DNA from: Adineta vaga
Taxonomy: Eukaryota > Animalia > Rotifera
Assembly (NCBI GenBank): GCA_021613535.1
Contig: CP075493.1
Coordinates: 7,440,001 to 7,504,000, forward strand
Direction: 5' to 3'
DNA: 64,000 nucleotides
Positions 21,117 through 27,510 of the stretch are shown piece after piece. The position numbers and the translations under genes were made by a program. The notes below the pieces were generated by a model. It was not told the origin of the DNA. It saw nothing but the letters and a program-made list of their open reading frames with translations, and did no database searches. Each line of letters begins with the position of its first letter. The first letter of the stretch is position 1.

Positions 21117-24100
21117 ATGTCAACATTACAACATAATCAATTGAATAGTTTTTCTCCAATACTTCTTTCACCATCGTCAACAACAATAACAAATCACATA
21201 ACTTTATTTGATAATAGTGATCAAGGTTCTGTTGATTCGGATTATACGTCATTAGGTAGTTCGAAATTCTATGGAAATAGTGGTTCAACATCATCGTTAC
21301 ATCGTCAAGGTCGTTCTCATTCAATTGATGAATTAGCATCAACAACAACAATACCAACAAGACATTTCAATGGAACATTAAATGTAAATAAATCAAATAA
21401 TGATCCATTACAATTCGTTAAAATTCATCCAAATCATGAATTGATCGAACGTGCACAAGAACAATTATGTCTTGCTGAATCGAGAAAACGTTTACAAGAA
21501 AATTATACATTAACTCATCATTCAAATGATAATAAAACTAATGATGAGGAGGTGGATTGGTCTAAGGTAAGAGAAAAAAAACGAAAGTATAATTAGACTT
21601 TATTACCTATTCATTAAGTAGAAAAAGAAACTAATATGGTGAAATTATATATTGTTTTATTTCTAAAGATCAAAGCAATGTTTGACGTGATTTTTATAAA
21701 AAAAATAATCATTTAATGAAATATTCTTCGAGTCTTTTGTTTTCTCTTAGACATAACTGTACATCTAATTAAATCTATTCATAGAAGATCAGAAGCATAA
21801 GAAAGAATGTTACCTAACCTTATGTCAACATACTCATCGTTTCTTCTTCTTCTTCTTTTGCTCTTGGCAGAAATCAATTATGAATTTGTTTTTTCGTGAA
21901 GACAAAATTCTTTCTTTCGCTTGCCAAATATTTCTCGACTTTATTTATTATTTTTTAAAGAAACATCGAAAACTCATTTTGTCCAGATTGTTTTTTCGAT
22001 CAAATTCCTTCTAAAGTTCGACATATTCACATAACTTAATCATTATTTCTTACGTGAACTAAGAAGAAGTTGAAGAACAAAAGAAAAGATTAGTTACTTT
22101 TCTTTTTTGTAGACACCATGCATACTTTACTCGAATGTATCAAATAAAATGAAAAGAAAGCCTTTGTAGTTCTAATAACATGCTCAATTTCTTTTACAAG
22201 TATTTTCAATGGATACTATGATGAGAAGACGTCAAACGTCCATATCGATTCTTTGGTATCACGTAGGAAAACATATTCAAATCTTCATGTACGATAGTCA
22301 AGGTTTTTTCTTCAATGAAATTAGGAAGGAACAGTCGTCTCTCATTACGATTGTTATCTTGGCATTTCTTTTTTCATTTCTGCTCAAAACAGTATTCCTA
22401 TTGTCTGTTACTCATCATTGAAACAGAAGAAATCGAGAGAGAGAGAGAGAGAGAGAGAAAAAATAGACAGAATAAGACTACATGCATCAGCTTGATGAAT
22501 TGTGTAAGACGAGTATGTGAACAAGATCAAAAACGCGAGTGTATATGTATATGTAAAATGGGTTGTGGAAGTACGAAAGAAATATCCAATGAGGAGAAGA
22601 ATGTGAGTGTTAATTTTTGTTGTTCGAAAGAATTGAGATAATATAAATGAAGTTTGTGAAAAAACAATGATATATTTGAAATTTTTAGGCTGTTGACAGT
22701 TGGCGACAAAAGCGAGAACAAAAACGTGTAAAAAATGTGAATAGTACCGATGATAATCGACCATTATCACCGATAAAAGTTGAATCTATTCCAAAGTAAG
22801 ATCAATTCTGTTCTTTCTCCTGTACAATTCATTCTTTTATACAGACTTGATGTATCGAAAAAACTCATCAATGAAACTGTTTCTAAACCTTTATGTACTG
22901 TTCCATCACCACCGATTGAAAAAACAAAATCAAAAAGTCCTTCACCAATGCGAAACAAAGTAGAAAACAAAAGAATATTTCGTATTTTTTTTCCCGATTG
23001 TTTACATATGTTTGTAATAGGGTCCATCAAAAATACATGAAATATCTATTCAAAGACCACTTGATATTCGTGGTTTTGGATTTAAACTTGATGGTGGTCG
23101 GACACAAAATCGACCCATTTTTGTTTCAACAATTGAAGAAGGTTGAAATCAACGAAATTTAATCTTCATCTTAATTCTTTTCGTTATTCTTTAGGTAGTC
23201 CTGCAGATAAAGCTGGACTATGTATTGATGATGAAATTCTATCAATCAATGATGAAAATGTCGAAAATATCACATATGATCAAGTGCGAAAAATTCTTAA
23301 AGAACGAAATATACGTGGAAGTATTAAAATGACTGTTCGAACGTATGAAGGTAATATTGACATTCATATTAAATATATCCCTGATAAGTGTTTAAAGTAG
23401 AGATAATAGAAGCACTATAATGAGTAGGATATATATATATATATATACATATACATATTAAGTGTAATTGATTTTGATTTATATGTTAGATAATCAATAG
23501 GAATGAATTTGAAATCAATCATACAAGTTTTAATACTAACCTTGTTGTTTATCTTTGATATTATCAATTCTTATCGAATTATTTTCTTCTTAGATATTAT
23601 TGATGATAATTCTCAAACAGTTTCAACTGGTTTTACAACTGATCATAGTCGAACTCCATCGCCACAAAAACCATTATTAACTACTCGAACAACTTCACCA
23701 CCGATTTATACTCCAATAACTAAAACAAATACAACTCCATCACCAACTGGGAAACCTTTATCACCTGTGTATACATTTCTACCTTATGATTCATCTTCGA
23801 CTGATATAAACGAATCTCCTTCTGTCCAACCAGCAGTTTCCTCATCATTAAATATATTTGCACCAAAACCATTTCGTTCAACTGCTTCAATTAATCTTGA
23901 TACTCAAAATAGTCAAGAATCAGTAAGATTTTGCTTCTTTTCCACTCGATATTTCCTCAATCTTTCGATAAAATTCAGGCTTCGACATTTTCTCGAAAAG
24001 AATTACTTACTCTCGTGGTAATCATCTCGTTCTTTTCCTCTTTCATACATACGCTAAGTGCATGTTTATAAAACAAAAACAAAAAAAAAGTGAACAAAAA

Positions 24101-26923
24101 CCTTCTAGTGCTGCTTTTCTTTTCTCTGAAATCAATTCAATAAAGCATGTTCAGCTATTCTATTTTCTATTGTTCAGAATATGAACTATATATCACCAAT
24201 TGAAGCATTTCGAAGAATGCTTGAATCATCAAATACAACTAAACATGCGGAGAATGAGGTAGTTAAAACTATTGGATACTAATCATTACTCTCGGTGTTT
24301 GGACAATAATAACATGTTCTGTTTTTAACTTCAAATATGCTCGTAACTTTTAACAGCTTAACACAAGAACTTGAATGAATGAATCTCAATAATGTCTTCT
24401 AGTGCATGTTAGGATATTACATTAGTTCTCTTTTGAATCAATGAAGTTTTAAATTAAATTTATCGTCAAATTGACACTCTTTTTTGTTTTCTATCTAGAA
24501 TATTTGTGGTAAAGAACTTGAAGATCTCGAGATCGAACTTGATAAACAATTGAGAGAATCTGACGCGAAGAAAAAACGTGAGGTATCATTATATGATTTT
24601 ATAATTAGAAAATAGATAAGCACTATGTAGAGATTCTTTACAATAACATACTAATGAATTTTTTTTTTCAATACACATGCATGCCTACAAAACTCCTTCA
24701 TCTTACTTCTCATATTACATACTCATTTCTGTTTCATAGACAACAACTACGAATGAAAAACAACAAACAAATTCAATAAAATTTCCAGCACCACGAGTTT
24801 TAATCGATGCTTGTATGAATATTTTCTCTGCTTTTCATACTTGACTTTCCGTTTCGAATTCTTCTAGCTGAAATAGCAATGGAACGTCCACCACCCCTTC
24901 AACCTATCTCATCTCTAAATGTAGTATTACAAGGAAATTCAACTACAGACAGTAACATAAAACCTCAACAACAACAACAACACCAATTGTGTAAGAATCC
25001 TGATATTGCTCAAGTACGTTCATACGTTGAAAAACAAATGGATCAACTTCAACAAGATTTGGAGTTTGGATTTTCACGTACACCCAAAGTTCCTCCTTCA
25101 TCATCAACATCTGTTTTCTCGACAACGCCTGCTGCATCAGTAAGTCTTATTACATTCAAAAATGAAAGGGTTATTTTCTTCATTTTGTTTTTCAAAATTA
25201 GGATCTACAACAACAACCGGTGAATGTTCCTATCGATCTGACATATGCTTCATCATCTCAACCAGATTTTCTACGTTCATCATTGAAAAAATCTGTATCT
25301 ACTCAAAATGAACTTGATCAAATTCCGCCGAATCGTACATATGGTGTAAAAATCAATCCGAAAGAACAAGTGATTCATTATCTTGATCCATATTCACAAC
25401 AAAAATCATCACTTAACTATGCGAAACGTTCTATACCTGATCTACCTTCAATGACAACAGTTAATCGACCTTCAACAGCACATTCAATTGAACGTACTAT
25501 AAATGAACTACGAATTGATTTACCAGGACCATATTCATCACAACCTCAAACTATAAATCAACAACAAAAGAAAGTTACAATTCAAGTAGGTGATATCGGA
25601 TCCTCGCAAAGAATGACTAGGTAAATCTTTCGAACACCAACAGTCTTCCGTATGAAAAATCTTCCAAATCTCATTTAGTAAACTACTTCATACAACACTC
25701 AATCAAGCACCACGTAAAACTCAAGTTGAAGATCATACATGGATTACTAATGACCAAAGAAAAGCTATACATAAGAGAAGTCATAGTCATCGTTCAACAC
25801 CAACAACTTCACATCATCAAGAATTGCACATGGGTAGACCATCGACAACTCATTATCATGATCAATATACAAAAAGTGGATCAGAAAAAACTTTTGATCT
25901 ATCTCCAAATAAACAACATCGAACGTTTGTTTTTTTTTTCATTATGCAATGCAATAAAAACTTTCATCCGTTTTTTTATATAGAAGATCACCTGGACGTA
26001 CAATGAATAATGAACGTGTTTTATCTGTTAGTGGAAAACTACGTTGTTCAAGATGTGACGAAGAATTAGGTTAATTATCATTGGATGATATATTGAATAT
26101 TCATGCTAATCTTTTTCTATAGGACATGGTTCAGCAATGGTGATTGAATCTCTTGGATTATATTATCATATCGAATGTTTCCATTGTTGTGTTTGTAATA
26201 CTCCACTTTCATCATCACCAGGAGGAGTCGATGTTCGTGTACGCAGTAGTCGATTACACTGTCAAAATTGTTTTTCCGATGAAAATGGTAAGAAAAAGTG
26301 TACTAATATATTTGTTGTCAACATCTAATCAATAAATGAGTACCTATAAATTCACTATCTATTTTCCTAGGAGATTGGATATCCGACGTAAGAAGAAGAA
26401 TTGATCTTTTCTTTCTTCCCTTTTCATATTGCTGGCAAAATCTTTTGATGCTTTCGTGCTTAACACTCTTTATACATACATTTATTTCAGATATGTTGTA
26501 TTTCATATATGAGATAAAAAAAAAGGAACCGTGTGTCTCTTTCAGTAGCGAATGAGATAATCTAAGCATTATGTGAGAAGATAGACACACGTATCATTGA
26601 TATTTTTGTTTCTACACGCTCTGTTCTACTCATTATTGAATTTCAATCTCAGCCTGAAACAAAAAACGCCTTTCGCAATATACTATTGCAATTGATGCTA
26701 AAACTTTTTGCTTATCTCAGCAAATTCAATATTAGTTTCTTCTTATCTATCTGTTTCTAATGAAAATATGTAGTTAGTTGAATATCAACAAAAGATATGA
26801 GACGAATATGAAATTTTTTCATTTTCTCGCATGTACAAATTAACGAAATTACAAGATAAAGTTCATTCAATCCAAACCAATGATTTCTTCTCTATTTTAG
26901 GTGTGAAATTAAGTGCTGTTTAA
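21117..26923 (+). CDS. LMO7: LMO7/Smallish(Smash)-like protein with PDZ domain, C-terminal LIM domain and PDZ-binding C-terminus
   Basis: DWSK|AVDSWRQKR segment; PDZ (GFGFKLDGG...GSPADKAGLCIDDEILSIN); LIM VLSVSGKLRCSRCDEELGHGSAMVIESLGLYYHIECFHCCVC...VRVRSSRLHCQNC, typical of LMO7/LIMCH1/Smash; last exon 26901-26923 GVKLSAV*. True 5' end uncertain. Confidence 0.82.
22435..22457. repeat. (GA)n microsatellite just upstream of the internal MGCGSTK exon
   Basis: Direct run of GA dinucleotides. Confidence 0.8.
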
Positions 26924-27510
26924 AGCTATTATTCTACAAAAGAAAATCTCTTTTATTGTCGATCATATGCAATCAAAATTCAATTCTCATTCTCTCTCAT
27001 TCACTCCTGTTTCACATGTCAATTTACTTTCATAATCAACCAACATTGAACATTTATATTTGGTTTCCTCAATAAGAAGAATACATGAAAACTTTTCTTC
27101 TTATAATAATTTTTGAAAGAAAAACTCTTTATTGTATATAAATACAAAGTACCGTTTGTTTTTCTTCTCTTGTACAGTTCTTGATCTATACATCCACATA
27201 TATATATATACACATACATATATGCAGAAGCGAACAGTTTGTTTCTTGCTTCGTTGTTACTGTTACTGTTCGTCTAGATTGACTATTGTGTTCATTTCGT
27301 TTCATTTTCTTCTATTTTCAGTTTTATATCTCGAAAAAAAAGTTAAATGAAAAACAAAACAAAAAAAAATGACAAGAAAAAAAACCCGTTTCCTATCTTC
27401 TCTATGTGTTAGACTCTATTGTTTTCTTTTTTGTGTTTACTCAGAGAAAGAACTCATTTGGAAAAGAAAGAATAAGAAATCATCAATGAATTTTTGTAGA
27501 ATAAAATACG

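Follow-up and report, generated by a model that had tools for sequence, protein, structure and literature searches.

A conserved 17-nt microexon and a dual-frame last exon predicted to give a bdelloid Smash/LMO7-like protein two alternative PDZ-ligand tails

The Smash/LMO7-like locus of Adineta vaga

The stretch of 64,000 nucleotides analysed here (the window) comes from chromosome 1 of Adineta vaga and carries the gene I4U23_002378, which encodes a PDZ- and LIM-containing relative of Smash/LMO7. All features are given in window coordinates and lie on the forward strand. The public protein model of the gene (P0207; UJR15435.1, "hypothetical protein I4U23_002378 [Adineta vaga]", 914 aa) maps to 21117 to 26325 by tblastn; its exons from 25677 to 26071 are 100% identical to the window, and its LIM sequence is the same. 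The same tblastn alignment places the first coding exon of the long isoform (MSTLQHNQLN...) at 21117-21593. An alternative first coding exon, MGCGSTKEISNEEKN, lies at 22558-22602, followed by the donor GTGAGT; it is missing from the public A. vaga model and is kept in relatives, and its MGCGS start is also found in A. steineri P0006, Rotaria P0195 and P0202, A. ricciae P0205, and D. carnosus P0159. The MGC start resembles, and might act as, an N-terminal lipidation signal.

The PDZ domain is located upstream of the LIM domain, at about 22.8-23.4 kb (Pfam PF00595/PF17820), and the exon map assigns it to the exons of 22783-23361. An exon of 27-28 residues (N.N/THxSPIEAFR.ML...), found at 24178-24258 and at L012:6642-6731 in R. 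socialis, is present in the R. socialis model P0189 and absent from P0221 and P0229 of the same locus; it is likely to be a second cassette exon of this gene. The exon at 25984-26069 carries the LIM domain's first zinc finger (...SVSGKLRCSRCDEELG), as read from the window and the exon map, and the remaining LIM exon at 26123-26287 (Pfam, 1.7e-09) ends in phase 1 with GAA AAT G, followed by gtaaga.

Downstream of the LIM exon, an 83-nt intron (26288-26370), which holds a read-through stop (26326-26328) and an AATAAA signal (26331-26336), precedes the conserved 17-nt microexon GAGATTGGATATCCGAC at 26371-26387. This microexon encodes G-D-W-I-S-D and is flanked by the acceptor tattttcctag and the donor gtaaga. 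A 513-nt intron (26388-26900) with a conserved TCTTTTGATGCTTT block at 26441-26454 separates it from the last exon, whose dual-frame start, GTGTGAAATTAAGTGCTGTTTAA, occupies 26901-26923 after tctattttag and was identified from the window and from relatives. The 3' UTR extends over 26924-27300, with a putative 3' end. An NSUN5-like gene begins at about 27511, a few hundred bases past the 3' UTR, and some public Rotaria models (P0201 and P0202) fuse the LIM gene with it, an artefact of annotation.

The LIM exon was used in a whole-library HMMER search, which, together with cluster look-ups, placed its nearest relatives in the bdelloid rotifers Adineta, Rotaria, and Didymodactylos. Every HMMER match whose sequence was read aligns to this exon at 52-89% identity, and most annotated full-length matches terminate 7-9 residues past the LIM domain. 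The rotifer protein has a C-terminal LIM domain of the LMO7/Smash subtype, directly followed by a class I tail homologous to FSCV/FSKV. Vertebrate LMO7 also possesses a PDZ domain, as the rotifer protein does. The DUF4757 domain (PF15949), which is listed for arthropod kin, gave no Pfam match in the rotifer proteins.

The microexon and the two frames of the last exon

The splice sites put forward in the original prediction proved to be correct to the base, both by direct reading and by script. Skipping of the microexon, which joins 26287 to 26901, yields ...ENGVKLSAV with a stop at 26921-26923, the last exon being read as (G)GT GTG AAA TTA AGT GCT GTT TAA (GVKLSAV-stop). Inclusion of 26371-26387 yields ...ENGDWISDV, for which the last exon contributes only GTG TGA (V-stop), with the stop at 26904-26906. 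The cassette lies within the 27-30 nt limit that defines a microexon; its length is not divisible by three, so that it is a non-triplet cassette, and the dual-coded stretch amounts to 6 nt (GTG TGA), while both outputs are tails of seven residues. As had been proposed, both A. vaga tails fit the class I PDZ ligand, -SAV and -SDV, with Ser at -2 and a hydrophobic C-terminus. Both stops are also located past the final junction (26900/26901), in the last exon. Under the exon-junction rule, an mRNA whose stop lies in the last exon is not an expected target of nonsense-mediated decay (NMD), and thus neither mRNA should be subject to it.

The uniqueness of the cassette was examined by a script that scanned the 613-nt intron for AG..GT cassettes of 3-60 nt. 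Among the 58 cassettes found, three have a GTRAG donor together with a pyrimidine-rich acceptor, and only the one at 26371-26387 is stop-free. By our own estimate, about one in ten such introns would by chance contain a stop-free cassette that is 2 mod 3 in length and places Ser/Thr at -2; given a good-site, stop-free candidate, we expect these two properties together in a few percent of instances. The window sequence taken alone is therefore suggestive of a microexon, and it is the conservation in relatives described below that raises it far above chance.

The microexon acceptor is a tandem TAGGAG of the NAGNAG type (26368-26373), which is also seen in A. steineri and in L004. With its second AG in use, the exon would be 14 nt long, the frame shift would be unchanged, and the tail would read ENDWISDV, lacking Gly. 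The intron just 3' of the microexon (26388-26454) is partly conserved, as GTAAGAAGAAGAA...TTTGCTTTTCTTC and TCTTTTGATGCTTT, both of which contain UGCU (YGCY-type) motifs that could be candidate splicing-factor sites. A hairpin that pairs the microexon donor (GUAAGAAGAAG) with a downstream CUUCUUUCUU was predicted in Adineta and Rotaria loci and was rejected, as its z-scores range from -2.0 to +1.1 in low-complexity sequence; sequestration of the donor is unsupported.

Searches for the products of the window copy itself were also carried out. Word searches with the LIM exon (30-95 aa range) and with the LIM regions of relatives, in which exons were queried one at a time, found no A. vaga protein or contig carrying either spliced tail from this copy; the read-through model P0207 was all that they returned for it. 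An exact look-up of the read-through ORF of the window in public assemblies gave no record, nor did a look-up of the locus of A. ricciae P0205. The microexon 17-mer alone, compared with JGI metagenome contigs, gave 40 matches, all of them chance matches in unrelated contexts.

Conservation and transcripts among bdelloids

Genomic loci were compared from the A. vaga contig-4 paralogue (L010), A. steineri (L011), R. socialis (L012/13), and D. carnosus (L014), and further from L002/3, L004-7, and L008. The cassette is present in 8/8 genomic loci and in one transcript, and its length is exactly 17 nt throughout, so that the absence or variable length in relatives that would have counted against the microexon was not encountered. 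Each locus contains one stop-free cassette sequence consisting of YAG, 17 nt, and GTAAG[AG], situated 54-106 nt past the LIM exon. The consensus peptide across loci is G-[A/D]-W-x-[S/A]-[N/D], represented by GAWRSN, GAWRSD, GAWRAN, and GAWKSN in relatives and by GDWISD in the window. When the first intron was aligned (A1), invariant columns were concentrated at the exon end and at TAGG.G..TGG....C..A.GTAAG, the remaining intron being poorly conserved and gap-rich. Read-through ORFs from further metagenomic and Logan contigs contain the same cassette in its own or another frame (LGAWKSNVR and RRLEIQCKK).

Codon differences among nine cassettes also point to the inclusion frame as the coding one. 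In pairwise comparison this frame shows 77 synonymous to 45 non-synonymous differences, against 9:91 and 26:79 in the other two frames; these counts are descriptive because the pairs are not independent, and their direction is still clear. Of all these cassettes, that of the window has diverged most (DWISD vs consensus AWRSN). Ser at -2 is found in 8/9 of the relatives' inclusion tails and is replaced by Ala in one (RANV), so the inclusion tail does not carry a class I motif everywhere. Most bdelloid copies end in -SNV, and the -SDV ending is confined to Adineta and there to the paralogue lineage of the window. In A. steineri L011, the cassette with identical flanks occurs twice, at L011:5733-5749 and L011:5955-5971, 222 nt apart, which is a tandem duplication of the microexon.

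The last exon is conserved in a corresponding manner. In 7/7 loci with enough sequence, AG followed by GTNTRA, with a pyrimidine-rich acceptor and a seven-residue skip tail, is located 331-1343 nt downstream of the cassette. L010 and L012/13 each have a second AG-GTNTRA match, with a poor acceptor and no seven-residue skip tail. The GTGTGA start expected in relatives is retained in its coding sense and varies in its letters: in the same seven loci the inclusion frame always reads Val-stop, by the codons GTG, GTA, or GTT and the stops TGA or TAA, and the shared form is GTN TRA. The skip frame reads G[VIL][KR][LS]S[AV]V-stop across loci.

Both types of splice junction, the presence of which had been proposed for A. 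vaga, were found in spliced contigs of relatives. Inclusion is seen in the Logan contig L001 (SRR31189393, 1972 nt), which has an intron-free ORF of 419 aa across several exons and joins the LIM exon (...GATAATCAC G) to the 17 nt (GCGCTTGGAGATCAAAT) and then to the last exon (GTTTAA...). Skipping is seen in the Logan contig L016 (SRR22100210), where the LIM exon (...GATGATAATG) is joined directly to GTGTGAAATTAAGCGCCGTTTAA. In addition, the JGI proteins P0160, P0211, P0191, and P0194 end in AWRSNV; their ORFs of 626-915 aa lie on contigs of 2.5-3.4 kb, which are far shorter than the intron-bearing gene, and we thus infer that they represent spliced transcripts. At the R. socialis locus L012, the models P0189 and P0229 end in AWRSNV and P0221 ends in VKLSAV. 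The inclusion and skipping transcripts come from different species or genes (runs), and it is as gene models that both tails occur at one locus.

Alignment A2 of the 3' UTR shows blocks conserved in the genomes of relatives and in L001. Two of them, ATATGCAATCAA at 26965-26976 and GCAGAAGCGAACAGTTTGTTTCTTG at 27224-27248, are shared by different genera, by the two A. vaga paralogues, and by transcript L001; GCAGAAGCGAACAGTTTGTTTCTTG is followed by GTTGTTACTGTT...GATTGA within 27224-27290. These blocks may be regulatory elements. Since they lie past 26923 and are common to the relatives and L001, they support 26901 onward as the true terminal exon. Collectively, the comparative evidence and the transcripts of relatives strongly support the splice-switch architecture as a predicted property of the gene.

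Competing readings and comparison with known systems

Four other readings of these data have to be weighed. The one that survives best, and is nevertheless unlikely, holds that the window copy retains its cassette only as a decaying relic, that the cassette is still spliced in the contig-4 paralogue and in other species, and that only ...VKLSAV is made here. DWISD indeed departs from the AWRSN consensus at 3/5 positions, and the searches described above returned no A. vaga protein or contig with a spliced tail from this copy. A relic would, however, hardly be expected to keep the 17-nt length, both splice sites, the open frame, the Trp, the Ser, and the terminal Val-stop, all of which are intact. 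Moreover, the copies that share the LIM-sequence variant of the window keep the tail type (A. ricciae P0205, AWLSD-V; A. steineri L011, AWRSD-V), and the changes in the window therefore look like lineage variation under constraint.

It is very improbable that the microexon is constitutive and the VKLSAV frame an unused remnant, even though inclusion is displayed by most of the transcript-derived contigs found (L001, P0160, P0211, P0191, and P0194). In every locus the skip-frame peptide has been conserved, with synonymous changes, in a stretch that would belong to the 3' UTR if it were unused, and the spliced contigs L016, P0200, P0216, and P0217 use the skip junction.

The public model itself provides another reading, in which the transcript ends at the AATAAA of 26331 and the main product has no PDZ-binding tail. 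UJR15435.1 runs from the LIM exon into the intron, ends in ...ENGKKKCTNIFVVNI, and misses both spliced tails; the AATAAA follows closely after the stop, and intron-retaining contigs occur in relatives (P0162 and L015). L015, from a possible non-bdelloid relative, displays intron read-through only. The read-through peptide, however, differs between species (KKKCTNIF, KN, KEYYSF, TYSQ, and others), intron retention is common noise in assembled contigs, and the conserved 3' UTR blocks sit past 26923 and occur in transcript L001, all of which makes it highly doubtful that this is the main product. The ending of UJR15435.1 is either a misannotation or possibly a minor intronic-polyadenylation form without a PDZ-binding tail, and the read-through product may exist as a minor third form. 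Finally, a chance AG...GT pair in an AT-rich intron, for which the two further good-site cassettes of the same intron could be cited, is effectively refuted, because the cassette keeps its position, length, frame, and splice sites in 8 loci and is present in spliced contigs, including L001.

We return to the splice switch as the preferred reading: probably, the bdelloid Smash/LMO7-like gene on A. vaga chromosome 1 yields the ancestral GVKLSAV tail when the microexon is skipped and a second S-x-V tail when it is included. The LIM exon terminates one base into a Gly codon, and its direct splicing to the last exon would give the ancestral LIM-plus-tail module ending in GVKLSAV, which is homologous to the GVKFSCV tail of Drosophila Smash. 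Inclusion of the 17 nt would shift the frame by +2, so that the last exon would add only Val-stop and the protein would end in G-D-W-I-S-D-V, a tail that matches the skip tail in length, is of the S-x-V type, and bears a conserved Trp at position -4. Both forms would be made from this copy. In the functional reading, which is plausible, the microexon tail would be a working PDZ ligand, its partner preference may differ from that of the ancestral tail, and epithelial and neuronal use might be separated.

The assignment of the ancestral state relies on kin from other animals, the full-length forms of which end in GVKFSCV, GIKFSCV, AGLKFSKV, GVKFSKV, AGLKYSAV, or GFEFTEV. The skip tail GVKLSAV matches the animal-wide Smash tail GVKFSCV, which indicates that the skip tail is ancestral and the microexon tail was added; the Trp-bearing tail is seen only in bdelloids among the sequences examined. 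Some non-rotifer kin (P0018, P0025, P0038, P0053, and P0183) end in ...EG[IT]x[FYH][ML][GA][TVA]F instead of ...KFSKV. This ending, which directly continues the LIM exon or occurs in full-length models, appears to be a separate conserved alternative tail of other phyla.

A more far-reaching proposal can be advanced only tentatively, and on balance we do not expect it to hold in full. The Trp tail, G-[A/D]-W-x-S-[N/D]-V, which was not seen in the non-bdelloid kin examined, may be an innovation older than the split of the A. vaga paralogues, which we take to reflect an ancient genome duplication, and may have been under selection in both copies. In that case it could offer a further PDZ ligand and steer the Smash/LMO7 scaffold towards another PDZ partner, perhaps the PDZ domain of the protein itself, and inclusion would act as a regulated switch of junctional wiring.

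Apart from this proposal, the analysis amends the C-terminal end annotated for a conserved cell-junction scaffold in the reference bdelloid genome, where the public model is without a functionally important tail. It also describes an unusually compact frame-shifting microexon that has stood the test of evolution: two equal-length, predicted PDZ-ligand tails are interchanged through the reading of six nucleotides (GTN TRA) in two frames. The arrangement is kept by both ancient paralogues and thereby provides a natural test case for selection on dual-frame sequence, as well as for isoform-specific choice of PDZ partners. The principle is not new; non-triplet splicing that produces alternative C-termini is a known class, and both tails are already present in gene models of relatives. 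These bdelloid models are public, and a description of them was not found in the literature searched.

Splice control of PDZ-ligand tails is known in the NMDA receptor GRIN1 (C2/C2') and in PMCA (a/b), where alternative splicing close to the 3' end moves the stop or alters the frame and thereby sets the tail. In these variants, the motif is gained or lost, or exchanged together with long unrelated tails. Unlike GRIN1 and PMCA splicing, the rotifer 17-nt exon would exchange two short S-x-V tails of equal length.

The closest relative in terms of domain organization is the LIM-PBM module of Drosophila Smallish (Smash, CG43427) and vertebrate LMO7, which, like the rotifer protein, has a C-terminal LIM domain and a class I PDZ-binding tail within 7-9 residues. 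The statement in the original prediction that Drosophila Smash binds junctional scaffolds through its C-terminal motif is borne out by the literature: FSCV belongs to the class I PDZ-binding motifs and interacts with Baz PDZ2/3 as well as with the Cno PDZ (Beati et al. 2018, PMC5839775). In Smash, the PM and PI isoforms share the LIM-PBM module, and PJ is without it (PMC5839775). No isoform with a different PDZ-binding tail is reported in that paper, whereas the rotifer microexon would swap one tail for another.

With respect to the splicing event, C. elegans and humans provide described cases of non-triplet alternative splicing that leads to alternative C-termini, among them a non-triplet microexon in tnt-3 (PMC13247117). 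As would the rotifer microexon, that of C. elegans tnt-3 shifts the frame without NMD, and in tnt-3 two functional C-termini result (PMC13247117). The two systems differ in the extent of dual coding: tnt-3 encodes long unrelated segments in its two frames, whereas in the rotifer gene a dual-coded stretch of 6 nt would suffice to give two seven-residue tails of the same class.
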